A stretch of 64,000 nucleotides of DNA from Auanema rhodensis. Its lineage: Eukaryota; Animalia; Nematoda. The notes beneath the pieces are model-generated. The model saw only the letters and a list, made by a program, of their open reading frames with translations. It was not told the origin of the DNA and did not search any database. Below, one piece after another: positions 1 to 28,200 of this stretch. The position numbers and the translations under genes are program-made. The DNA is taken from contig OZ059895.1 of assembly GCA_964057225.1 (NCBI GenBank), positions 1,488,001 through 1,552,000 of the forward strand, read 5' to 3'. Each line of letters begins with the position of its first letter. Positions within the stretch are counted from its first letter, which is position 1.

Positions 1-3000
1 CAAAATGTTTTTGGAAGCAATGTTGAGTGTACATGGAAACTCAACATACACTAATGCATCATTTTTCAAACGATCATAACTAATTTTTGTATCACGCGTT
101 TCTCAATGTAGTATAGTGCATTCGATGCGGATTTTTAAGCTGCGTCGCTCTGTGTTATCAGATTTGCGCTAGCTTAAAAATGCACCGAGATATCAACTGA
201 TATAAGTTCACACTTATATCCTCGATTTTCACCCTGAAGAATTAATTTTTTCGTTGAATAACATTGTCCATCGTCTTTGCCTTGAAAAATGGAATCTAAA
301 AACATCTACTTTCTGCTAAATTATTTTGAAATTTTTCGAAAAAATTTTTGTCAAAATGTTTTTGGAAGCAATGTTGAGTGTACATGGAAACTCAACATAC
401 ACTAATTCATCATTTTTCAAACGATCATAACTAATTTTTGTATCAAGCGCTTCTTGATGTAGTATAGTGCATTCGATGCGGATTTTTAAGCTGCGTCGAT
501 CTGTGTTATCAGATTTGCGCTAGCTTAAAAATGCACCGAGATATCAACTGATATAAGTTCACACTTATATCCTCGATTTTCACCCTGAAGAATTAATTTT
601 TTCGTTGAATAACATTGTCCATCGTCTTTGCCTTGAAAAAAGGAATCTAAAAACATCTACTTTTTGCTAAATTATTTTGAAATTTTTCGAAAAAATTTTT
701 GTCAAAATGTTTTTGGAAGCAATGTTGAGTGTACATGGAAACTCAACATACACTAATGCATCATTTTTCAAACGATCATAACTAATTTTTGTATCACGCG
801 TTTCTCAATGTAGTATAGTGCATTCGATGCGGATTTTTAAGCTGCGTCGCTCTGTGTTATCAGATTTGCGCTAGCTTAAAAATGCACCGAGATATCAACT
901 GATATAAGTTCACACTTATATCCTCGATTTTCACCCTGAAGAATTAATTTTTTCGTTGAATAACATTGTCCATCGTCTTTGCCTTGAAAAAAGGAATCTA
1001 AAAACATCTACTTTTTGCTAAATTATTTTGAAATTTTTCGAAAAAATTTTTGTCAAAATGTTTTTGGAAGCAATGTTGAGTGTACATGGAAACTCAACAT
1101 ACACTAATGCATCATTTTTCAAACGATCATAACTAATTTTTGTATCACGCGTTTCTCAATGTAGTATAGTGCATTCGATGCGGATTTTTAAGCTGCGTCG
1201 CTCTGTGTTATCAGATTTGCGCTAGCTTAAAAATGCACCGAGATATCAACTGATATAAGTTCACACTTATATCCTCGATTTTCACCCTGAAGAATTAATT
1301 TTTTCGTTGAATAACATTGTCCATCGTCTTTGCCTTGAAAAATGAAATCTAAAAACATCTACTTTCTGCTAAATTATTTTGAAATTTTTCGAAAAAATTT
1401 TTGTCAAAATGTTTTTGGAAGCAATGTTGAGTGTACATGGAAACTCAACATACACTAATGCATCATTTTTCAAACGATCATAACTAATTTTTGTATCAAG
1501 CGCTTCTTAATGTAGTATAGTGCATTCGATGCGGATTTTTAAGCTGCGTCGATCTGTGTTATCAGATTTGCGCTAGCTTAAAAATGCACCGAGATATCAA
1601 CTGATATAAGTTCACACTTATATCCTCGATTTTCACCCTGAAGAAATAATTTTTTCGTTGAGTAACATCGTCCATCGTCTTTGCCTTGAAAAAAGGAATC
1701 TAAAAACATCTACTTTTTGCTAAATTATTTTGAAATTTTTCGAAAAAATTTTTGTCAAAATGTTTTTGGAAGCAATGTTGAGTGTACATGGAAACTCAAC
1801 ATACACTAATGCATCATTTTTCAAACGATCATAACTAATTTTTGTATCACGCGTTTCTCAATGTAGTATGGTGCATTCGATGCGGATTTTTAAGCTGCGT
1901 CGATCTGTAATATCAGATTTGCGCTAGCTTAAAAATGCACCGAGATATCAACTGATATAAGTTCACACTTATATCCTCGATTTTCACCCTGAAGAATTAA
2001 TTTTTTCGTTGAATAACATTGTCCATCGTCTTTGCCTTGAAAAATGGGATCTAAAAACATCTACTTTTCGCTAAATTATTTTGAAATTTTTCAAAAAAAT
2101 TTTTGTCAAAATGTTTTTGGAAGCAATGTTGAGTGTACATGGAAACTCAACATACACTAATGCATCATTTTTCAAACGATCATAACTAATTTTTGTATCG
2201 AGCGTTTCTTAATGTAGTATAGTGCATTCGATGCGGATTTTTAAGCTGCGTCGATCTGTGTTATCAGATTTGCGCTAGCTTAAAAATGCACCGAGATATC
2301 AACTGATATAAGTTCACACTTATATCCTCGATTTTCACCCTGAAGAAATAATTTTTTCGTTGAATAACATTGTCCATCGTCTTTGCCTTGAAAAAAGGAA
2401 TCTAAAAACATCTACTTTTTGCTAAATTATTTTGAAATTTTTCGAAAAAATTTTTGTCAAAATGTTTTTGGAAGCAATGTTGAGTGTACATGGAAACTCA
2501 ACATACACTAATGCATCATTTTTCAAACGATCATAACTAATTTTTGTATCACGCGTTTCTTAATGTAGTATAGTGCATTCGATGCGGATTTTTAAGCTGC
2601 GTCGCTCTGTGTTATCAGATTTGCGCTAGCTTAAAAATGCACCGAGATATCAACTGATATAAGTTCACACTTATATCCTCGATTTTCACCCTGAAGAATT
2701 AATTTTTTCGTTGAATAACATTGTCCATCGTCTTTGCCTTGAAAAATGGAATCTAAAAACATCTACTTTCTGCTAAATTATTTTGAAATTTTTCGAAAAA
2801 ATTTTTGTCAAAATGTTTTTGGAAGCAATGTTGAGTGTACATGGAAACTCAACATACACTAATGCATCATTTTTCAAACGATCATAACTAATTTTTGTAT
2901 CAAGCGCTTCTTAATGTAGTATAGTGCATTCGATGCGGATTTTTAAGCTGCGTCGATCTGTGTTATCAGATTTGCGCTAGCTTAAAAATGCACCGAGATA

Positions 3001-8424: not shown

Positions 8425-8747
8425 CAAAATGTTTTTGGAAGCAATGTTGAGTGTACATGGAAACTCAACATACACTAATGCATCATTTTTCAAACGATCA
8501 TAACTAATTTTTGAGCTGCGTCGCTCTGTCTTAAGCTGCGTCGCTCTGTGTTATCAGATTTGCGCTAGCTTAAAAATGCACCGAGATATCAACTGATATA
8601 AGTTCACACTTATATCCTCGATTTTCACCCTGAAGAATTAATTTTTTCGTTGAATAACATTGTCCATCGTCTTTGCCTTGAAAAATGGAATCTAAAAACA
8701 TCTACTTTTTGCTAAATTATTTTGAAATTTTTCGAAAAAATTTTTGT
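8425..8747. repeat. 323-bp rearranged satellite monomer (48-bp deletion plus 20-bp local duplication)
   Basis: Reads ...CTAATTTTTGAGCTGCGTCGCTCTGTCTTAAGCTGCGTCGCTCTGTG... and the next monomer starts at 8748. Confidence 0.95.
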
Positions 8748-11555
8748 CAAAATGTTTTTGGAAGCAATGTTGAGTGTACATGGAAACTCAACATACACTA
8801 ATGCATCATTTTTCAAACGATCATAACTAATTTTTGTATCAAGCGCTTCTTAATGTAGTATAGTGCATTCGATGCGGATTTTTAAGCTGCGTCGATCTGT
8901 GTTATCAGATTTGCGCTAGCTTAAAAATGCACCGAGATATCAACTGATATAAGTTCACACTTATATCCTCGATTTTCACCCTGAAGAAATAATTTTTTCG
9001 TTGAATAACATTGTCCATCGTCTTTGCCTTGAAAAAAGGAATCTAAAAACATCTACTTTTTGCTAAATTATTTTGAAATTTTTCGAAAAAATTTTTGTCA
9101 AAATGTTTTTGGAAGCAATGTTGAGTGTACATGGAAACTCAACATACACTAATGCATCATTTTTCAAACGATCATAACTAATTTTTGTATCACGCGTTTC
9201 TCAATGTAGTATGGTGCATTCGATGCGGATTTTTAAGCTGCGTCGATCTGTAATATCAGATTTGCGCTAGCTTAAAAATGCACCGAGATATCAACTGATA
9301 TAAGTTCACACTTATATCCTCGATTTTCACCCTGAAGAATTAATTTTTTCGTTGAATAACATTGTCCATCGTCTTTGCCTTGAAAAATGGGATCTAAAAA
9401 CATCTACTTTTCGCTAAATTATTTTGAAATTTTTCGAAAAAATTTTTGTCAAAATGTTTTTGGAAGCAATGTTGAGTGTACATGGAAACTCAACATACAC
9501 TAATGCATCATTTTTCAAACGATCATAACTAATTTTTGTATCAAGCGTTTTTCAATGTAGTATAGTGCATTCGATGCGGATTTTTAAGCTGCGTCGATCT
9601 GTGTTATCAGATTTGCGCTAGCTTAAAAATGCACCGAGATATCAACTGATATAAGTTCACACTTATATCCTCGATTTTCACCCTGAAGAATTAATTTTTT
9701 CGTTGAATAACATTGTCCATCGTCTTTGCCTTGAAAAATGGGATCTAAAATCATCTACTTTTCGCTAAATTATTTTGAAATTTTTCGAAAAAATTTTTGT
9801 CAAAATGTTTTTGGAAGCAATGTTGAGTGTACATGGAAACTCAACATACACTAATGCATCATTTTTCAAACGATCATAACTAATTTTTGTATCAAGCGTT
9901 TCTTAATGTAGTATAGTGCATTCGATGCGGATTTTTGAGCTGCGTCGATCTGTGTTATCAGATTTGCGCTAGCTTAAAAATGCACCGAGATATCAACTGA
10001 TATAAGTTCACACTTATATCCTCGATTTTCACCCTGAAGAATTAATTTTTTCGTTGAATAACATTGTCCATCGTCTTTGCCTTGAAAAATGAAATCTAAA
10101 AACATCTACTTTTTGCTAAATTATTTTGAAATTTTTCGAAAAAATTTTTGTCAAAATGTTTTTGGAAGCAATGTTGAGTGTACATGGAAACTCAACATAC
10201 ACTAATGCATCATTTTTCAAACGATCATAACTAATTTTTGTATCAAGCGTTTTTCAATGTAGTATAGTGCATTCGATGCGGATTTTTAAGCTGCGTCGAT
10301 CTGTGTTATCAGATTTGCGCTAGCTTAAAAATGCACCGAGATATCAACTGATATAAGTTCACACTTATATCCTCGATTTTCACCCTGAAGAATTAATTTT
10401 TTCGTTGAATAACATTGTCCATCGTCTTTGCCTTGAAAAATGAAATCTAAAAACATCTACTTTTTGCTAAATTATTTTGAAATTTTTCGAAAAAATTTTT
10501 GTCAAAATGTTTTTGGAAGCAATGTTGAGTGTACATGGAAACTCAACATACACTAATGCATCATTTTTCAAACGATCATAACTAATTTTTGTATCAAGCG
10601 TTTCTTAATGTAGAATAGTGCATTCGATGCGGATTTTTAAGCTGCGTCGATCTGTGTTATTAGATTTGCGCTAGCTTAAAAATGCACCGAGATATCAACT
10701 GATATAAGTTCACACTTATATCCTCGATTTTCACCCTGAAGAAATAATTTTTTCGTTGAATAACATTGTCCATCGTCTTTGCCTTGAAAAAAGGAATCTA
10801 AAAACATCTACTTTTTGCTAAATTATTTTGAAATTTTTCGAAAAAATTTTTGTCAAAATGTTTTTGGAAGCAATGTTGAGTGTACATGGAAACTCAACAT
10901 ACACTAATGCATCATTTTTCAAACGATCATAACTAATTTTTGTATCACGCGTTTCTCAATGTAGTATAGTGCATTCGATGCGGATTTTTAAGCTGCGTCG
11001 ATCTGTAATATCAGATTTGCGCTAGCTTAAAAATGCACCGAGATATCAACTGATATAAGTTCACACTTATATCCTCGATTTTCACCCTGAAGAATTAATT
11101 TTTTCGTTGAATAACATTGTCCATCGTCTTTGCCTTGAGAAATGGAATCTAAAAACATCTACTTTTTGCTAAATTATTTTGAAATTTTTCGAAAAAATTT
11201 TTGTCAAAATGTTTTTGGAAGCAATGTTGAGTGTACATGGAAACTCAACATACACTAATGCATCATTTTTCAAACGATCATAACTAATTTTTGTATCAAG
11301 CGTTTCTTAATGTAGTATAGTGCATTCGATGCGGATTTTTGAGCTGCGTCGATCTGTGTTATCAGATTTGCGCTAGCTTAAAAATGCACCGAGATATCAA
11401 CTGATATAAGTTCACACTTATATCCTCGATTTTCACCCTGAAGAAATAATTTTTTCGTTGAATAACATTGTCCATCGTCTTTGCCTTGAAAAAAGGAATC
11501 TAAAAACATCTACTTTTTGCTAAATTATTTTGAAATTTTTCGAAAAAATTTTTGT

Positions 11556-11878
11556 CAAAATGTTTTTGGAAGCAATGTTGAGTGTACATGGAAACTCAAC
11601 ATACACTAATGCATCATTTTTCAAACGATCATAACTAATTTTTGAGCTGCGTCGCTCTGTCTTAAGCTGCGTCGCTCTGTGTTATCAGATTTGCGCTAGC
11701 TTAAAAATGCACCGAGATATCAACTGATATAAGTTCACACTTATATCCTCGATTTTCACCCTGAAGAATTAATTTTTTCGTTGAATAACATTGTCCATCG
11801 TCTTTGCCTTGAAAAATGGAATCTAAAAACATCTTCTTTTCGCTAAATTATTTTGAAATTTTTCGAAAAAATTTTTGT
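11556..11878. repeat. Second copy of the 323-bp rearranged monomer
   Basis: Identical junction at about 11636-11680, 3131 bp (323 + 8x351) after the first copy. Confidence 0.95.
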
Positions 11879-14800
11879 CAAAATGTTTTTGGAAGCAATG
11901 TTGAGTGTACATGGAAACTCAACATACACTAATGCATCATTTTTCAAACGATCATAACTAATTTTTGTATCAAGCGCTTCTTAATGTAGTATAGTGCATT
12001 CGATGCGGATTTTTAAGCTGCGTCGATCTGTGTTATCAGATTTGCGCTAGCTTAAAAATGCACCGAGATATCAACTGATATAAGTTCACACTTATATCCT
12101 CGATTTTCACCCTGAAGAAATAATTTTTTCGTTGAATAACATTGTCCATCGTCTTTGCCTTGAAAAAAGGAATCTAAAAACATCTACTTTTTGCTAAATT
12201 ATTTTGAAATTTTTCGAAAAAATTTTTGTCAAAATGTTTTTGGAAGCAATGTTGAGTGTACATGGAAACTCAACATACACTAATGCATCATTTTTCAAAC
12301 GATCATAACTAATTTTTGTATCACGCGTTTCTCAATGTAGTATGGTGCATTCGATGCGGATTTTTAAGCTGCGTCGATCTGTAATATCAGATTTGCGCTA
12401 GCTTAAAAATGCACCGAGATATCAACTGATATAAGTTCACACTTATATCCTCGATTTTCACCCTGAAGAATTAATTTTTTCGTTGAATAACATTGTCCAT
12501 CGTCTTTGCCTTGAAAAATGGGATCTAAAAACATCTACTTTTCGCTAAATTATTTTGAAATTTTTCGAAAAAATTTTTGTCAAAATGTTTTTGGAAGCAA
12601 TGTTGAGTGTACATGGAAACTCAACATACACTAATGCATCATTTTTCAAACGATCATAACTAATTTTTGTATCAAGCGTTTTTCAATGTAGTATAGTGCA
12701 TTCGATGCGGATTTTTAAGCTGCGTCGATCTGTGTTATCAGATTTGCGCTAGCTTAAAAATGCACCGAGATATCAACTGATATAAGTTCACACTTATATC
12801 CTCGATTTTCACCCTGAAGAATTAATTTTTTCGTTGAATAACATTGTCTATCGTCTTTGCCTTGAGAAATGGAATCTAAAAACATCTACTTTTTGCTAAA
12901 TTATTTTGAAATTTTTCGAAAAAATTTTTGTCAAAATGTTTTTGGAAGCAATGTTGAGTGTACATGGAAACTCAACATACACTAATGCATCATTTTTCAA
13001 ACGATCATAACTAATTTTTGTATCAAGTGTTTCTCAATGTAGTATAGTGCATTCGATGCGGATTTTTAAGCTGCGTCGATCTGTGTTATCAGATTTGCGC
13101 TAGCTTAAAAATGCACCGAGATATCAACTGTTATAAGTTCACACTTATATCCTCGATTTTCACCCTGAAGAAATAATTTTTTCGTTGAATAACATTGTCC
13201 ATCGTCTTTGCCTTGAAAAAAGGAATCTAAAAACATCTACTTTTTGCTAAATTATTTTGAAATTTTTCGAAAAAATTTTTGTCAAAATGTTTTTGGAAGC
13301 AATGTTGAGTGTACATGGAAACTCAACATACACTAATGCATCATTTTTCAAACGATCATAACTAATTTTTGTATCACGCGTTTCTCAATGTAGTATAGTG
13401 CATTCGATGCGGATTTTTAAGCTGCGTCGATCTGTGTTATCAGATTTGCGCTAGCTTAAAAATGCACCGAGATATCAACTGATATAAGTTCACACTTATA
13501 TCCTCGATTTTCACCCTGAAGAATTAATTTTTTCGTTGAATAACATTGTCCATCGTCTTTGCCTTGAAAAATGGGATCTAAAATCATCTACTTTTCGCTA
13601 AATTATTTTGAAATTTTTCGAAAAAATTTTTGTCAAAATGTTTTTGGAAGCAATGTTGAGTGTACATGGAAACTCAACATACACTAATGCATCATTTTTC
13701 AAACGATCATAACTAATTTTTGTATCAAGCGTTTCTTAATGTAGTATAGTGCATTCGATGCGGATTTTTGAGCTGCGTCGATCTGTGTTATCAGATTTGC
13801 GCTAGCTTAAAAATGCACCGAGATATCAACTGATATAAGTTCACACTTATATCCTCGATTTTCACCCTGAAGAATTAATTTTTTCGTTGAATAACATTGT
13901 CCATCGTCTTTGCCTTGAAAAATGAAATCTAAAAACATCTACTTTTTGCTAAATTATTTTGAAATTTTTCGAAAAAATTTTTGTCAAAATGTTTTTGGAA
14001 GCAATGTTGAGTGTACATGGAAACTCAACATACACTAATGCATCATTTTTCAAACGATCATAACTAATTTTTGTATCAAGCGTTTTTCAATGTAGTATAG
14101 TGCATTCGATGCGGATTTTTAAGCTGCGTCGATCTGTGTTATCAGATTTGCGCTAGCTTAAAAATGCACCGAGATATCAACTGATATAAGTTCACACTTA
14201 TATCCTCGATTTTCACCCTGAAGAATTAATTTTTTCGTTGAATAACATTGTCCATCGTCTTTGCCTTGAAAAATGAAATCTAAAAACATCTACTTTTTGC
14301 TAAATTATTTTGAAATTTTTCGAAAAAATTTTTGTCAAAATGTTTTTGGAAGCAATGTTGAGTGTACATGGAAACTCAACATACACTAATGCATCATTTT
14401 TCAAACGATCATAACTAATTTTTGTATCAAGCGTTTCTTAATGTAGTATAGTGCATTCGATGCGGATTTTTAAGCTGCGTCGATCTGTGTTATTAGATTT
14501 GCGCTAGCTTAAAAATGCACCGAGATATCAACTGATATAAGTTCACACTTATATCCTCGATTTTCACCCTGAAGAAATAATTTTTTCGTTGAATAACATT
14601 GTCCATCGTCTTTGCCTTGAAAAAAGGAATCTAAAAACATCTACTTTTTGCTAAATTATTTTGAAATTTTTCGAAAAAATTTTTGTCAAAATGTTTTTGG
14701 AAGCAATGTTGAGTGTACATGGAAACTCAACATACACTAATGCATCATTTTTCAAACGATCATAACTAATTTTTGTATCACGCGTTTCTCAATGTAGTAT

Positions 14801-21391: not shown

Positions 21392-21395
21392 AAAC
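21392..21395. other. Target-site duplication AAAC, left copy
   Basis: Empty monomer reads TGG-AAAC-TCAAC. The left junction is TGG-AAAC|LTR and the other junctions are LTR|AAAC-TCAAC (21775-21778 and 25292-25295). Confidence 0.85.
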
Positions 21396-21774
21396 AATCA
21401 AAGAACGAAAAATAAAAAGAGAAAGATTTATTAAAAAAAAACAAAAAAAAATACAAAAAAATTCAAGAGAAAATTCCAAACTGAAAAAAATATAAAAAAA
21501 TTCCTTATCACAATAATTTTAGGACAAAAACAACTAAATATTGTTTTAATCAGATTACGGTAGTTGATTATCAACAGTTCACTGTTTACCAACAATCTCT
21601 AAATGGAGCGCGATTACTATGGATTGTTTTATCAATGGGTCATTTTATTCAAATTATTCATTTTATTTAATTTTTTGATGAATAATTGTTATCTTAATAT
21701 TTTATATAAATTATATTATATATTTATCTTCATTTATACTATTCATTTTAGTATCTATAGCCATATTCTTGACA
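21396..21774 (-). repeat. 3' LTR (or solo LTR), 379 bp
   Basis: Direct repeat of 24914-25291 differing by one A in a homopolymer (A9 vs A8). Minus strand begins TGTCAAGAA and ends TTCTTTGATT. Flanked by AAAC on both sides. Confidence 0.92.
21427..21432 (-). promoter_or_regulatory. Candidate LTR polyadenylation signal AATAAA
   Basis: AATAAA on the minus strand about 30 nt from the LTR end, within T-rich sequence. The AT-rich context makes a chance match possible. Confidence 0.45.
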
Positions 21775-22115
21775 AAACTCAACATACACTAATGCATCAT
21801 TTTTCAAACGATCATAACTAATTTTTGTATTAAGCGTTTCTCAATGTAGTATAGTGCATTCGATGCCGATTTTTAAGCTGCGTCGATCTGTGTTATCAGA
21901 TTTGCGCTAGCTTAAAAATGCACCGAGATATCAACTGATATAAGTTCACACTTATATCCTCGATTTTCACCCTGAAGAATTAATTTTTTCGTTGAATAAC
22001 ATTGTCTATCGTCTTTGCTTTGAAAAATGGAATCTAAAAACATCTACTTTTTGCTAAATTATTTTGAAATTTTTCGAAAAAATTTTTGTCAAAATGTTTT
22101 TGGAAGCAATGTTGA
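21775..22115. repeat. 341-bp near-complete satellite monomer located between the LTR and the internal region
   Basis: Runs from AAACTCAACATAC to GCAATGTTGA. It carries the same variants (TATTAAGCG, GATGCCGAT, GTCTATC, GCTTTG) as the monomer at 25292-25632. Confidence 0.96.
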
Positions 22116-22175
22116 ACAATAAAAATAAACATTTACAACATACATGAGAAAATTTAAATTTCAACAAGAAATTAG

Positions 22176-22472
22176 TTATGGTGCTGTTTTTTTAAACTGT
22201 TGTTGAGGCTTATGGGTTTTGTGCATCTCATTCAGTGCAGTCAGCTTTTCAGTCCAATTCTCGGACTCCCATTTACCGACAATCTCTCCTTTCTTTATCG
22301 TGGTTGGCTGGCATGTCATGTTAGCCACAATCACTGTAGTGGAACTATTGGTGTCCACTTTACATATTCCCGTGGGTATATCACTCCTATGGGATACCAG
22401 TAAGCTATCTTTCTGCTCGTCACATGAGATTTGTAGCGTTCTACTTTTATTCGCAGGTATATAAACTCTCTG
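22176..22472 (-). pseudogene. In-frame continuation of gag-pro beyond the TGA (98 codons, post-protease polyprotein region), truncated before RT
   Basis: Manual translation after TGA is stop-free: QRVYIPANKSRTLQISCDEQKDSLLVSHRSDIPTGICKVDTNSSTTVIVANMTCQPTTIKKGEIVGKWESENW...TAP*. It includes the 60-aa track ORF, which is in the same frame. Confidence 0.7.
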
Positions 22473-24485
22473 TCAGGCTATGGCCTCCTTTCTATAAAAC
22501 TTCAAAGATATGCCCAAATCTTTCAGGGCATTCGTACCAATAAGTATAGAATCATCTCTACTTTTTCTCACCAAAAAACATACTTGTGCAGTTTTTTTAC
22601 TTTCTGAGCAATAAACTTCACAGCTTATTGCTCCAACAAAATTCATTCGCGTACCCGAGGCATTCGCTATGAACTTATCTCCATTCCAAGGAAGTTGAGT
22701 TACACTTCTATCTAAGTCAACCCCTTCATTCATCAAATTAACTAGAGCTTGTGACGACATCACTGATATTTGTGATCCCGTGTCAATAAGAACTTTTTTA
22801 TTTCTCATGCTGCAGATTAACATAGGTAGTAAACTCTGCTCACCAATCAATTTTGCATCATAGCTGTTGTTGCATGTTTTGATAGTTTTGTTCCATGCAA
22901 CAGCTTGCTTATTCATAACAGAACCCATATTGTTCTGTTCTTCTTCAATTCTTTTAGAATTGTCTGATGGTCGTTTTCTCTCAGCACAATGTGTTGCTAT
23001 ATGACCACTTCTGTTACATATGTAACAAATAACTTCTTTTCTCTGTGGAAAATTACGAACCTTTTCAGTTACGTAACTGCCACGATTGGTCATGTGTTGA
23101 CCACTAGCAGTATTATTCTGCTTCAAAAATCTCAGCCTGGGCAGGTTTACTTCAGGTATTCTGTCCTTTCTATGCTGATTGTAGTGAATGCGCTTATTTC
23201 TTTCACAACGTAAAGCGACCTCTTTCACCTTCTCATACACCTCCCCTTCTTCACTAGTCTCTATTGTCTCAAGTACTTGTAATGCACAAGTACATTCTCT
23301 GAGTACCTCATACAAGACTTGAGCTCTTGTGAACGATAACTTTGACATAGACAATCCGGGGTAAGCCTTCCTAGAAGTTTCTTCTAGTTTCTTACAAAAG
23401 CTTATTAGATTGCTATTGTTGTCAAACTTCAAAGATTTAAGAGCAGCTATGGCATCTAACCTACTTGCTCTCTTAGAATACTCATGTTGCTTATTCAGTT
23501 CCTCTATTATTTTGTCGAGCGAACTGTTTCTGATTATTTCAGGCAACTCATCATACCTATCTCTCGCCTCTCCTCTTAATTTTTCTACAAACAGCGTTCT
23601 GCGGCCGCTTGCCGACAACGTGCTTTTTGGGTATTTCAGGTGAAACCCTTCTACAAAATGGTTCCATTTCTCGAACGACCCACTCGAAAAACTTGGAACA
23701 TCAGGCAGCAATTGCGCTCGCATTATGTCCAAAAACGCTTCATTCTGCGCGCTGAGTCCATTAAAAGGCAAAGATGACTCACCCTTGGAGTCTAATCCCT
23801 CTTTTTTCTCCTGTTCCTGTTGAACATCCGTCAACCATTTCTGAGTTGTTCCTAACTCCTTCTGTCGATGCAACTGTAAAATATATTCAATTTCAGAATT
23901 TTCCTCTTCTATTTTACCTGCTGCTTTATCATCAATCATCATATCCGCCATAGCTAATTGCGCTTGGCTCTCGATAGCTGCTGATCTCTGCAAATTAAAA
24001 CTATTAAATATTTCATGCTTCAAAGATTTTTTATCACATTTGAAAAAATCGCAAAAATCTTTCATAGTACTATTACTGGCCCTCATCTCGTCCACTATCT
24101 CACTTTCATTGAGTTGGAAAATCTCACAAATGAATTTAGTTGTTTCCGCTCGTTTATCAGCTAACTTCAGAGTATTACCCAACTCTGAAGGCTTTTTGAG
24201 CCCACTCTTGTTCATTACTGTAATAATGGACTGGATAAATCTCCAATTTTGCCCTTTTCGCAATTCACTAGTTAAATTTTGCTTCATTGAGTTTATCAAA
24301 TTAGCAACTTTCTGCTCTGCTCTCCTTTTCTCAGCAGAATTTCTGATTTTTTCCGTAAAATCTTTACGTAAACAATCATTCAACGGCTCAATAGCCGATA
24401 ATATTTCAGAGATGAATGAATTCAACATTACCTCTTCAAATGCGCTCTCGAAGTCCATATCGAGCAATTCATTCACAAATGACAT
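22473..24485 (-). CDS. gag: Retrotransposon Gag-aspartic protease polyprotein, 670 aa from the first ATG
   Basis: Capsid-like segment (LPDVPSFS...WNHFVEGF...LRGEARDRYDELP), zinc knuckle CYICNRSGHIATHC (22986-23027), protease VLIDTGSQISVM (DTG at 22776-22784) and ILIGTNAL. The track start at 24497 is TTG; the first ATG is at 24485. Confidence 0.9.
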   Translation of the reverse strand: MSFVNELLDMDFESAFEEVMLNSFISEILSAIEPLNDCLRKDFTEKIRNSAEKRRAEQKVANLINSMKQNLTSELRKGQNWRFIQSIITVMNKSGLKKPSELGNTLKLADKRAETTKFICEIFQLNESEIVDEMRASNSTMKDFCDFFKCDKKSLKHEIFNSFNLQRSAAIESQAQLAMADMMIDDKAAGKIEEENSEIEYILQLHRQKELGTTQKWLTDVQQEQEKKEGLDSKGESSLPFNGLSAQNEAFLDIMRAQLLPDVPSFSSGSFEKWNHFVEGFHLKYPKSTLSASGRRTLFVEKLRGEARDRYDELPEIIRNSSLDKIIEELNKQHEYSKRASRLDAIAALKSLKFDNNSNLISFCKKLEETSRKAYPGLSMSKLSFTRAQVLYEVLRECTCALQVLETIETSEEGEVYEKVKEVALRCERNKRIHYNQHRKDRIPEVNLPRLRFLKQNNTASGQHMTNRGSYVTEKVRNFPQRKEVICYICNRSGHIATHCAERKRPSDNSKRIEEEQNNMGSVMNKQAVAWNKTIKTCNNSYDAKLIGEQSLLPMLICSMRNKKVLIDTGSQISVMSSQALVNLMNEGVDLDRSVTQLPWNGDKFIANASGTRMNFVGAISCEVYCSESKKTAQVCFLVRKSRDDSILIGTNALKDLGISLKFYRKEAIA

Positions 24486-24898
24486 TTCACCTATCAATGA
24501 AAAAAATTACTAGAAATTCCTCTACTAATTTATTGCTATTTGAAAGAATCAAACAAGCACTTATATCAAGAAAATTGAATTTACTTGATATTAGTTACTA
24601 CTACCCAAGTTCTGAATGTAGTTCACAGCGGAAGAAATCAGAAAAAGTGTTTAAAAGAAAACACTTTAACCAAAAACAACCGTACAACAATATACCAAGA
24701 GACACTGTTGTTACCAACACTGTCAAATGATAATTGTTCTGTAAACTTCACTTTTATTCGGCAAATACCAAACAAAATTGAATGAATACAAACAGAACCC
24801 TATTCAGGTAGCAGTGACTTTTTCACCAAACTCTATTCGAGCTTTCAAACAGGGTTATATGAGCAATTAGCTCAACCCAAACAATAAAATAGTGAAGA

Positions 24899-24913
24899 CC
24901 GGTTCGGCCCCCA
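24899..24913 (-). promoter_or_regulatory. Primer-binding site TGGGGGCCGAACCGG, tRNA-Pro type
   Basis: Directly follows the 5' LTR and starts with TGG. Its complement CCGGTTCGGCCC-CCA matches the 3' end of nematode tRNA-Pro as I recall it (not database-checked). Confidence 0.85.
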
Positions 24914-25291
24914 AATCAAAGAACGAAAAATAAAAAGAGAAAGATTTATTAAAAAAAACAAAAAAAAATACAAAAAAATTCAAGAGAAAATTCCAAACTG
25001 AAAAAAATATAAAAAAATTCCTTATCACAATAATTTTAGGACAAAAACAACTAAATATTGTTTTAATCAGATTACGGTAGTTGATTATCAACAGTTCACT
25101 GTTTACCAACAATCTCTAAATGGAGCGCGATTACTATGGATTGTTTTATCAATGGGTCATTTTATTCAAATTATTCATTTTATTTAATTTTTTGATGAAT
25201 AATTGTTATCTTAATATTTTATATAAATTATATTATATATTTATCTTCATTTATACTATTCATTTTAGTATCTATAGCCATATTCTTGACA
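24914..25291 (-). repeat. 5' LTR, 378 bp
   Basis: Direct repeat of 21396-21774, followed on the minus strand by the PBS, a leader of about 410 bp and gag. Confidence 0.93.
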
Positions 25292-25295
25292 AAAC
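25292..25295. other. Target-site duplication AAAC, right copy
   Basis: ...TTCTTGACA|AAAC-TCAACATAC resumes the satellite at monomer position 37. Confidence 0.85.
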
Positions 25296-28200
25296 TCAAC
25301 ATACACTAATGCATCATTTTTCAAACGATCATAACTAATTTTTGTATTAAGCGTTTCTCAATGTAGTATAGTGCATTCGATGCCGATTTTTAAGCTGCGT
25401 CGATCTGTGTTATCAGATTTGCGCTAGCTTAAAAATGCACCGAGATATCAACTGATATAAGTTCACACTTATATCCTCGATTTTCACCCTGAAGAATTAA
25501 TTTTTTCGTTGAATAACATTGTCTATCGTCTTTGCTTTGAAAAATGGAATCTAAAAACATCTACTTTTTGCTAAATTATTTTGAAATTTTTCGAAAAAAT
25601 TTTTGTCAAAATGTTTTTGGAAGCAATGTTGAGTGTACATGGAAACTCAACATACACTAATGCATCATTTTTCAAACGATCATAACTAATTTTTGTATTA
25701 AGCGTTTCTCAATGTAGTATAGTGCATTCGATGCGGATTTTTAAGCTGCGTCGATCTGTGTTATCAGATTTGCGCTAGCTTAAAAATGCACCGAGATATC
25801 AACTGATATAAGTTCACACTTATATCCTCGATTTTCACCCTGAAGAATTAATTTTTTCGTTGAATAACATTGTCTATCGTCTTTGCTTTGAAAAATGGAA
25901 TCTAAAAACATCTACTTTTTGCTAAATTATTTTGAAATTTTTCGAAAAAATTTTTGTCAAAATGTTTTTGGAAGCAATGTTGAGTGTACATGGAAACTCA
26001 ACATACACTAATGCATCATTTTTCAAACGATCATAACTAATTTTTGTATTAAGCGTTTCTCAATGTAGTATAGTGCATTCGATGCCGATTTTTAAGCTGC
26101 GTCGATCTGTGTTATCAGATTTGCGCTAGCTTAAAAATGCACCGAGATATCAACTGATATAAGTTCACACTTATATCCTCGATTTTCACCCTGAAGAATT
26201 AATTTTTTCGTTGAATAACATTGTCTATCGTCTTTGCCTTGAAAAATGGAATCTAAAAACATCTACTTTTTGCTAAATTATTTTGAAATTTTTCAAAAAA
26301 ATTTTTGTCAAAATGTTTTTGGAAGCAATGTTGAGTGTACATGGAAACTCAACATACACTAATGCATCATTTTTCAAACGATCATAACTAATTTTTGTAT
26401 TAAGCGTTTCTCAATGTAGTATAGTGCATTCGATGCCGATTTTTAAGCTGCGTCGATCTGTGTTATCAGATTTGCGCTAGCTTAAAAATGCACCGAGATA
26501 TCAACTGATATAAGTTCACACTTATATCCTCGATTTTCACCCTGAAGAATTAATTTTTTCGTTGAATAACATTGTCTATCGTCTTTGCCTTGAAAAATGG
26601 AATCTAAAAACATCTACTTTTTGCTAAATTATTTTGAAATTTTTCGAAAAAATTTTTGTCAAAATGTTTTTGGAAGCAATGTTGAGTGTACATGGAAACT
26701 CAACATACACTAATGCATCATTTTTCAAACGATCATAACTAATTTTTGTATTAAACGTTTCTCAATGTAGTATAGTGCATTCGATGCGGATTTTTAAGCT
26801 GCGTCGATCTGTGTTATCAGATTTGCGCTAGCTTAAAAATGCACCGAGATATCAACTGATATAAGTTCACACTTATATCCTCGATTTTCACCCTGAAGAA
26901 TTAATTTTTTCGTTGAATAACATTGTCTATCGTCTTTGCTTTGAAAAATGGAACCTAAAAACATCTACTTTTTGCTAAATTATTTTGAAATTTTTCGAAA
27001 AAATTTTTGTCAAAATGTTTTTGGAAGCAATGTTGAGTGTACATGGAAACTCAACATACACTAATGCATCATTTTTCAAACGATCATAACTAATTTTTGT
27101 ATTAAGCGTTTCTCAATGTAGTATAGTGCATTCGATGCCGATTTTTAAGCTGCGTCGATCTGTGTTATCAGATTTGCGCTAGCTTAAAAATGCACCGAGA
27201 TATCAACTGATATAAGTTCACACTTATATCCTCGATTTTCACCCTGAAGAATTAATTTTTTCGTTGAATAACATTGTCTATCGTCTTTGCCTTGAAAAAT
27301 GGAATCTAAAAACATCTACTTTTTGCTAAATTATTTTGAAATTTTTCGAAAAAATTTTTGTCAAAATGTTTTTGGAAGCAATGTTGAGTGTACATGGAAA
27401 CTCAACATACACTAATGCATCATTTTTCAAACGATCATAACTAATTTTTGTATTAAACGTTTCTCAATGTAGTATAGTGCATTCGATGCGGATTTTTAAG
27501 CTGCGTCGATCTGTGTTATCAGATTTGCGCTAGCTTAAAAATGCACCGAGATATCAACTGATATAAGTTCACACTTATATCCTCGATTTTCACCCTGAAG
27601 AATTAATTTTTTCGTTGAATAACATTGTCTATCGTCTTTGCTTTGAAAAATGGAATCTAAAAACATCTACTTTTTGCTAAATTATTTTGAAATTTTTCGA
27701 AAAAATTTTTGTCAAAATGTTTTTGGAAGCAATGTTGAGTGTACATGGAAACTCAACATACACTAATGCATCATTTTTCAAACGATCATAACTAATTTTT
27801 GTATTAAACGTTTCTCAATGTAGTATAGTGCATTCGATGCGGATTTTTAAGCTGCGTCGATCTGTGTTATCAGATTTGCGCTAGCTTAAAAATGCACCGA
27901 GATATCAACTGATATAAGTTCACACTTATATCCTCGATTTTCTTCCTGAAGAATTAATTTTTTCGTTGAATAACATTGTCCATCGTCTTTGCCTTGAAAA
28001 AAAGAATCTAAAAACATCTACTTTTTGCTAAATTGTATTGAAATTTTTCGAAAAAATTTTTGTCAAAATGTTTTTGGAAGCAATGTTGAGTGTACATGGA
28101 AACTCAACATACACTAATGCATCATTTTTCAAACGATCATAACTAATTTTTGTATTAAGCGTTTCTCAATGTAGTATAGTGCATTCGATGCGGATTTTTA

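Follow-up and report, generated by a model that had tools for sequence, protein, structure and literature searches.

A copy of a Ty3/gypsy-type LTR element in Auanema rhodensis carries a satellite monomer immediately in front of its 3'LTR, and this structure is best read as a one-off scar of local DNA repair and not as a new element family that carries satellite. The wider class of explanations, in which one insertion was followed by local recombination at the DNA level, has in our estimate a probability of about 0.85. The locus was read as assembled, in a stretch of 64,000 nucleotides (the window; positions 1,488,001-1,552,000 of OZ059895.1, GCA_964057225.1) which is one 351-bp satellite array throughout and is probably soma-eliminated DNA. 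On its own the rearranged copy matters little. It is a clean, very young and base-resolved case of LTR-anchored conversion running into flanking DNA, and it shows a route by which a satellite monomer can enter a retroelement transcription unit in an animal that probably discards its satellite blocks from somatic cells.

Organisation of the element

All features lie on the minus strand, in the order 5'LTR, PBS-like site, gag-protease, 341 bp of satellite and 3'LTR. All boundaries were read again and verified by script; the anatomy described in an earlier, sequence-only reading holds at every one of them, and the AAAC that it had placed at the outer edges is a 4-bp target-site duplication, GTTT, present on both sides. 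The upstream GTTT (25295-25292) is formed by the last 4 nt of the flanking monomer and the downstream one (AAAC on the plus strand) occupies 21392-21395. The 5'LTR (24914-25291, 378 bp) runs from TGTCAAG to TTTGATT, while the 3'LTR (21396-21774, 379 bp) has one T more in a T-run. The LTRs start with TG but end in ...GATT in all copies, departing from the TG...CA form, and their ends make up only an imperfect inverted repeat. An 18-mer beginning with TGG directly adjoins the 5'LTR (24896-24913) and does not vary among the 20 copies with a 5'LTR; one-mismatch matches to this PBS-like site are also present elsewhere in the genome.

The gag-protease frame, identified as an open reading frame with weak Pfam matches, extends over 670 codons (22473-24485) to an in-frame stop at 22475-22473, and the same frame continues for 98 codons (22176-22472) across a pol-deletion junction. 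The Pfam matches are to DUF1759, zf-CCHC and gag-asp_proteas, all below the curated cut-offs, and the translation shows CCHC and DTG motifs. The stop codon is private to this copy, the other copies of the same 3.64-kb form reading on to about 769 codons. RT, RNase H and IN domains are absent from this copy. A Bel/Pao assignment, hinted at by the weak DUF1759 match, was dropped once the pol domains of full-length relatives were seen: RVT_1, RT_RNaseH(_2), Integrase_H2C2 and rve occur there in the Ty3/gypsy order (PR-RT-RNase H-IN), and by this order the family is assigned to Ty3/gypsy. Downstream of the frame lies a leftover 3' untranslated tail (22116-22175) ending in ATTGT(T), which aligns with all other copies up to that point; the AT-rich tail of about 60 bp noticed earlier (22175-22116) is the 3' untranslated end that copies of this family normally have. 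The internal satellite copy (21775-22115, 340-341 bp), one 351-bp monomer minus 10 bp, fills the remaining space up to the 3'LTR.

A gag-protease subfamily that shares one pol deletion

The loss of RT, RNase H and IN is due to a deletion of about 4 kb which has a junction of its own at 22226-22228. This junction, including a 2-nt filler, is identical in the present copy and in all 3.64-kb copies, and the shared filler means that the pol deletion arose once. A tree of the 5' 2.7 kb from 17 copies was too poorly resolved to settle whether the 3.64-kb copies form a single clade, and the filler junction is the better evidence. The loss of pol is older than the local satellite event. The sequence-only reading had placed the satellite copy in place of both pol and the PPT, of which the second part stands, 84 nt with the PPT having been replaced, while the first does not, pol having gone in the older, family-wide deletion.

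The pol-deletion junction is found at this locus, at 21.30 Mb, 2.38-2.40 Mb and 3.22-3.245 Mb of C7 and at 2.34 Mb of C5. These places differ in flanks or orientation, so that the 3.64-kb form occupies five or more independent insertion sites, and 4-bp target duplications are seen in nine other copies too. Clearly, this is a gag-protease-only Ty3/gypsy subfamily mobilised in trans, and its copies are found almost exclusively in terminal satellite. On C7 the element together with satellite units has been amplified as higher-order repeats with a period of 5749 bp. The subfamily, its location in satellite and this co-amplification are possibly the more useful by-products of the analysis. Non-autonomous deletion derivatives of plant LTR elements (PMC13570524) are similar in that one internal deletion has left LTRs, PBS and PPT intact and that insertion, each time with its own target duplication, has taken place independently at several sites. 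The present subfamily differs in its long gag-protease frame and in residing nearly always in satellite.

Source of the internal satellite

The internal satellite is identical at 341 of 341 positions to the monomer beside the 5'LTR (25292-25632), which is the only such monomer in the window: among 167-170 monomers there is no second identical one, 13 are one site away, and the monomer directly downstream of the element differs at one site. The shared haplotype, already pointed out from the letters alone, is a unique combination of common variants and not a private SNP. As had also been proposed, the true direct repeat is about 720 bp long (21396-22115 and 24914-25632), and its two halves differ solely by one T in the T8/T9 run of the LTR. 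The satellite/LTR join is the same at both LTRs, as the sequence-only reading had noted. The satellite is thus of local source, and delivery from another array was ruled out, satellite copies on other contigs reaching just 96-99% identity to the internal one. Derivation of the satellite from the element was ruled out as well; when the monomer was compared with a full-length copy by low-stringency BLAST, nothing beyond chance matches of up to 20 nt appeared.

In every other copy an 84-nt segment with the purine-rich end GAGAGGCCGGGGA stands directly before the 3'LTR, and the other 3.64-kb copies keep this PPT-bearing segment and have no internal satellite. The present copy parts from all others exactly after ATTGT(T), where the alignment leaves a single shared T at the element/satellite junction (22115-22116); the 84 nt including the PPT are missing and satellite abuts the 3'LTR instead. 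A search with a 36-nt pattern of this junction, allowing up to 3 mismatches, returned no second site in the 181-Mb assembly. The satellite/LTR junction occurs twice in the assembly, both times at this locus, the 3518-bp spacing between LTRs is found for this pair only among 39 LTRs in the genome, and no other copy in the genome sits at this GTTT site. The junctions are confined to one locus and the satellite is of local source, in agreement with the preference for a single insertion expressed in the sequence-only reading.

The same reading had raised the idea of a non-autonomous family that carries and spreads satellite. A long gag-protease frame has indeed been kept and a transcript of this copy would hold a full monomer, but the 22115/22116 junction has one match in the assembly, at this locus, the satellite is local, the copy has no PPT and all other members of the subfamily lack internal satellite. 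The idea thus fails, for this assembly, the junction test which that reading had itself set for it, and such a family is extremely improbable. An assembly artefact could be suspected in an array so long and so repetitive; however, mis-joins fall in shared repeats, while this junction is novel and non-homologous and must exist in reads, and the array phase around the element and the target duplication are intact. We regard an artefact as very improbable.

Formation of the rearranged copy

Within the wider class we tentatively favour a one-step, LTR-anchored repair that would have placed a copy of the 5' flank ahead of the 3'LTR. A pol-deleted 3.64-kb member of the Ty3/gypsy family first inserted normally into the satellite, creating the GTTT duplication. 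A later DNA break within or beside the PPT/3'LTR region would then have been repaired out of register, the LTR-side end having paired, either on the sister chromatid or within the same molecule, with the 5'LTR identical to it. Extension would have proceeded leftward from the LTR across 340 nt of the 5'-flanking monomer until the extending end left its template on entering the next satellite hairpin, and the extended end would have been joined to the other broken end via the single shared T. Such a course would leave the 84-nt PPT segment swapped for a satellite monomer and a 720-bp direct repeat behind. Of the break-repair model in the sequence-only reading, the LTR-to-LTR copying of the 5' flank is retained in this scheme; its deletion of RT and IN is not, the loss here being one of 84 nt. 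With the PPT lost in this event and a private stop codon in its frame, the copy is now a dead end and is not expected to move.

The type of end joining and the stalling at a hairpin are suggested by the two ends of the copied tract. Junction homology of 1 nt is the hallmark of end joining by polymerase theta in the C. elegans germline (PMC4490562), and tandem duplications in that species have been explained by extension of a break end on the sister chromatid followed by end joining (PMC7368036). We assume here that the repair biases of Auanema rhodensis may be like those of C. elegans. At its far end (25632/25631) the copied tract stops 2-3 nt inside the 3' arm of an intact satellite hairpin (25626-25653; 9-bp arms, 10-nt loop; DNA fold -7.4 kcal/mol, z -3.1), a coincidence for which the chance is about 8% (28/351). 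As a general integration target of the family the hairpin was ruled out by the positions of the other copies, which sit at at least 8 other monomer positions, in a 176-bp satellite and in non-satellite DNA.

The same structure, with the same 1-nt junction, would result from two steps, namely a tandem duplication, mediated by microhomology, of a unit of 3517 bp (340 bp of flank, the 5'LTR and the internal region to ATTGTT) and a subsequent LTR-LTR recombination removing the second internal region. Exchange between LTRs is frequent in this genome, as seen from LTR-int-LTR-int tandems on C5 and C6 and from a solo LTR bounded by a target duplication of its own, and C. elegans is known to undergo kb-scale tandem duplication with microhomology (PMC7368036). 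This course requires two events where one is enough, and no intermediate is present anywhere in the assembly; we hold it to be unlikely. On one sequence it is inseparable from the one-step repair, and the two LTRs are too similar to reveal a conversion tract.

A third course, again leading to the same final structure, starts from two copies, or a copy and a solo LTR, that occupied the same monomer base at a distance of one monomer, an arrangement which either unequal crossover in the satellite or renewed insertion at that site could have produced. A 476-bp deletion covering the PPT segment together with the first 3'LTR and 14 bp of satellite would have followed, the second copy being reduced to a solo LTR. 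The higher-order repeats on C7 show that element and satellite are amplified together, an illegitimate interior/satellite junction cuts off another copy as well, and one monomer site (ATTT) is used by three clusters, so that repeated hits on one site do occur. Three events would be needed, however, the GTTT site is used by no other copy in the genome, and the internal monomer is an exact match to the 5' flank, with no hybrid signature, although the downstream monomer differs at one site. We consider this course improbable.

Capture at the RNA level would invoke reverse transcription of a read-in transcript from the upstream satellite, in which minus-strand DNA is extended to the hairpin in the RNA and then switches non-homologously to just upstream of the PPT, and the resident copy is converted by the aberrant cDNA. 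Such a course would account for the exact U3 boundary, for a tract that ends at the hairpin and for how little homology the junction has. The cDNA would, however, have to find its own locus again among about 20 homologous copies, plus-strand priming of a product that has no PPT would be left unexplained, and the outer LTR ends carry a normal GTTT duplication, which shows that the insertion itself was canonical; we judge such a capture to be quite improbable. Were it true, the copy would record transduction of a 5' flank by an LTR element, element RNA could carry a germline-restricted satellite monomer, and a possible first step to retroelement-mediated satellite seeding would be at hand.

Comparison with known systems

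Internal-to-flank conversion is already known from rice and maize LTR elements. In PMC5751070, conversion between interior and flank is cited for 3 of 77 rice elements (Vitte & Panaud 2003) and 1 of 53 grass elements (Ma et al. 2005). The favoured one-step repair would resemble these plant cases, as they are presented there, in that the flank of one LTR is copied inside the other, anchored by LTR homology, rarely and in single copies. It differs in the satellite monomer as flank, the nematode host, the replaced PPT and the tract end at a hairpin.

Polymerase-theta end joining in the C. elegans germline (PMC4490562, PMC7368036) is alike in the 1 nt of homology and in the extension of an end on a homologous template before joining. 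Its templated inserts measure a few to tens of nucleotides, whereas 340 nt and part of an LTR would have been copied here, and the invasion would have been out of register between two LTRs.

Plant elements of the Ogre/Retand type (PMC7004042, PMC11963269) also have satellite-like sequence between the coding region and the 3'LTR, and their tandem repeats between pol and the 3'LTR seed satellites. Those repeats are family-wide and transpose with the element, in contrast to the one flank-captured monomer in a single copy that has no PPT. Nematode Ty3/gypsy elements of the Cer1 type are alike in layout, with a single long gag-pol frame (PR-RT-RNase H-IN), LTRs and a 4-bp target duplication.

Architecture of the window's copy

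The whole 64-kb window is filled by one array of a 351-bp satellite (31% GC), which is broken once, by 3.9 kb at 21396-25291. Re-reading of the minus strand bore out the anatomy and coordinates of the sequence-only reading. On this strand, the upstream satellite ends in GTTT before the 378-bp 5'LTR (25291-24914), which is followed directly by an 18-nt site resembling a primer-binding site (PBS) and beginning with TGG, a 415-nt leader and the gag-protease frame (24485-22473, continued in frame for 98 more codons as far as 22176). An AT-rich tail of 60 nt then leads to the internal satellite of 341 bp (22115-21775) and the 379-bp 3'LTR (21774-21396), after which GTTT is seen again and the satellite resumes with its phase unbroken. 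The in-frame stop at 22475-22473 is private to the window's copy, the other copies reading through. Pfam matches of the gag-protease part (DUF1759, zf-CCHC and gag-asp_proteas) are all sub-threshold, and CCHC and DTG motifs are visible in it. The complement of the PBS-like site has ten one-mismatch matches outside the element copies (contigs C8 at 26.31 Mb, C80, C82 and C7 at 4.04 Mb of assembly G000), which could represent genes for the primer tRNA or a different element family.

A mobile subfamily with a shared pol deletion

In the 181-Mb assembly, 39 matches to the LTR were counted. Sorted by LTR spacing, they fall into structural classes of ~7.6 kb (three loci), 6.7, 4.9, 4.3 and 3.64 kb, of which the last is the commonest; among these matches a spacing of 3518 bp is seen for the window's pair only. 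Full-length relatives contain a single long frame with RT, RNase H, integrase zinc domain and integrase core in Ty3/gypsy order. In these copies, ~400-500 residues C-terminal of the integrase and its SH3-like part are without a Pfam match (1626-2810, minus strand, of the stretch L039, and the C-terminal part of the frame in L040); given the location of the family, this part could serve chromatin targeting or be envelope-like.

A single deletion of ~4.0 kb, with a 2-nt filler at its junction, separates the 3.64-kb class from the full-length copies, and exactly this junction is present in the window's copy at 22226-22228. The pol-deleted derivative is found at the window's locus, C7 21.30 Mb, C5 2.34 Mb, C7 2.38-2.40 Mb and C7 3.22-3.245 Mb. 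As these five loci are set apart by their flanks, their orientation or their 4-bp target duplication, the class is a non-autonomous subfamily mobilised in trans; the mobility of this pol-less subfamily is what is new here. Loss of pol is thus an older, family-wide property and not one of the window's locus, and the earlier description of the satellite as standing in place of pol does not hold, the same deletion junction being present at the four other loci.

The element/satellite junction occurs at one locus

What is specific to the window's copy lies further downstream. In the alignment of copies, ATTGTT is followed in all other copies of every class by 84 nt that close with a purine-rich tract (purines at 11 of 13 positions) adjoining the 3'LTR. 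This segment is missing from the window's copy, where the satellite follows directly after ATTGT(T); homology between the element tail and the satellite is 1 nt, the common T, and the 13 nt now preceding the 3'LTR are not purine-rich. An assembly artefact is an improbable explanation of this arrangement, since the junction is non-homologous, as judged from the assembled sequence.

A 36-nt pattern across the element/satellite boundary, searched in the whole genome with up to three mismatches, gave one match, and 100-nt BLAST recovered the full junction at the window's locus only among the candidates scored. The satellite/LTR junction occurs exactly twice in the genome, both times at this locus. 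By the criterion set out in the sequence-only reading, a transposing, non-autonomous family that carries and spreads satellite, one of its three models, is therefore refuted for this assembly.

Origin of the internal satellite

At 341/341 positions the internal satellite matches the monomer flanking the 5'LTR (25632-25292), and it is identical to no other of the ~167 monomers in the window. Thirteen window monomers, including the one directly downstream of the element, are one site away, and monomers on other contigs are 96-99% identical. Judged from these identities, the internal satellite is local, and it was either copied from the 5' flank or is shared with it. No homology was found between satellite and element. 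The 720-bp repeat of satellite and LTR has a single difference, one T in a homopolymer run; the event is a very recent one. Upstream of the element, the seven monomers at 25292-27738 are 99.1-100% mutually identical while those further off differ by 2-3%, which points to recent, local growth of the array beside the element.

One canonical insertion followed by local DNA-level recombination is our main reading, with a probability of about 0.85 for the whole class of such routes. This part of the sequence-only reading stands together with the structure; pol loss as a local event and the satellite-spreading family do not. Within the class we tentatively favour one-step, LTR-anchored repair. A break would arise near the polypurine tract (PPT)/3'LTR and the LTR-side broken end would pair with the 5'LTR, be extended by 340 nt into the 5' flank, and then be released and end-joined at the one common T. 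The copied tract reaches, at its far end, 2-3 nt into the 3' arm of the next satellite hairpin, an intact one with 9-bp arms (-7.4 kcal/mol, z -3.1), and the copying polymerase might have stalled there; the probability of such a meeting by chance is ~8%. Error-prone repair of breaks in the C. elegans germline proceeds by polymerase-theta end joining, for which one nucleotide of homology is enough (PMC4490562), and extension of one break end on the sister chromatid followed by end joining has been offered as explanation of tandem duplications (PMC7368036). Conversion between LTR-element interior and flanking DNA is cited for 3 of 77 elements in rice and 1 of 53 in grasses (in PMC5751070). The structure is therefore a single-copy repair scar of a kind already on record, in a newly characterised, non-autonomous family.

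The same end product would result if a tandem duplication of 3517 bp, mediated by microhomology, were followed by recombination between LTRs, a course that we consider the less likely. It would also result from two copies one monomer apart, if 476 bp were then deleted and the second copy collapsed to a solo LTR. Every step of this route has local precedent: clusters on C7 repeat the element together with six monomers in a higher-order period of 5749 bp, one C7 copy is cut at an illegitimate interior/satellite junction, and a solo LTR and LTR-internal-LTR-internal tandems are present in the genome; even so, we regard it as improbable. Reverse transcription, in which a read-in transcript, a switch at the RNA hairpin and conversion of the resident copy by cDNA would be needed, is less economical than one-step repair and very improbable.

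Terminal satellites and other copies

Most of the 351-bp satellite is found on C1, C3, C5, C6 and C7, no more than a few Mb from their ends. The germline genome of Auanema rhodense has been described as 180 Mb in seven chromosomes, with terminal multi-megabase blocks built of two autosomal repeats, repeat units of 167-504 nt and elimination of about 61% of the genome (bioRxiv 10.64898/2026.08.27.747507). From its location, the 351-bp satellite is probably the second terminal, eliminated repeat. The AT-1 FISH probe of that study has exact matches at 176-bp spacing in the satellite around the copy at C6 16.52 Mb (one per unit in L042 1-1110 and 7821-9000; also in the stretches L027 and L028). 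The matches fit A. rhodense as the source of this genome, and they show that the family inserts in the other terminal satellite as well.

The 3.64-kb element is co-amplified with six to nine monomers as higher-order repeats at C7 2.377-2.398 Mb (L031-L033) and C7 3.222-3.244 Mb (L036-L038), one example having its 5749-bp period repeated three times; array dynamics, besides transposition, therefore spread this element. Three subfamily clusters (L031/L032, L036/L037 and L034, C7 21.30 Mb) are inserted at one monomer ATTT, ~30 bp from the window's site; one is reversed in orientation, and two belong to separate, well-supported clades. A preferred target site within the satellite may lie behind this reuse. 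The copy at L031 6294-9314 (C7 2.3849 Mb) has a 5'LTR and gag-protease, ends inside the post-protease region without a 3'LTR and is joined straight to satellite; homology at this join is no more than 2 nt. The tandems at L035 (C5 2.34 Mb) and L041 (C6 19.46 Mb) have a common middle LTR, as unequal exchange between LTRs would be expected to produce.

At C1 18.37-18.58 Mb (L050-L058), a 328-bp variant of the satellite, with interspersed 91-bp sub-duplications, is without 23 bp that correspond to the 5' arm and loop of the hairpin. In two variant monomers (8461-8773 and 11592-11904), ~45 bp is swapped for a duplicated motif of 17-20 bp; their distance of 3131 bp hints at a nine-monomer higher-order period.
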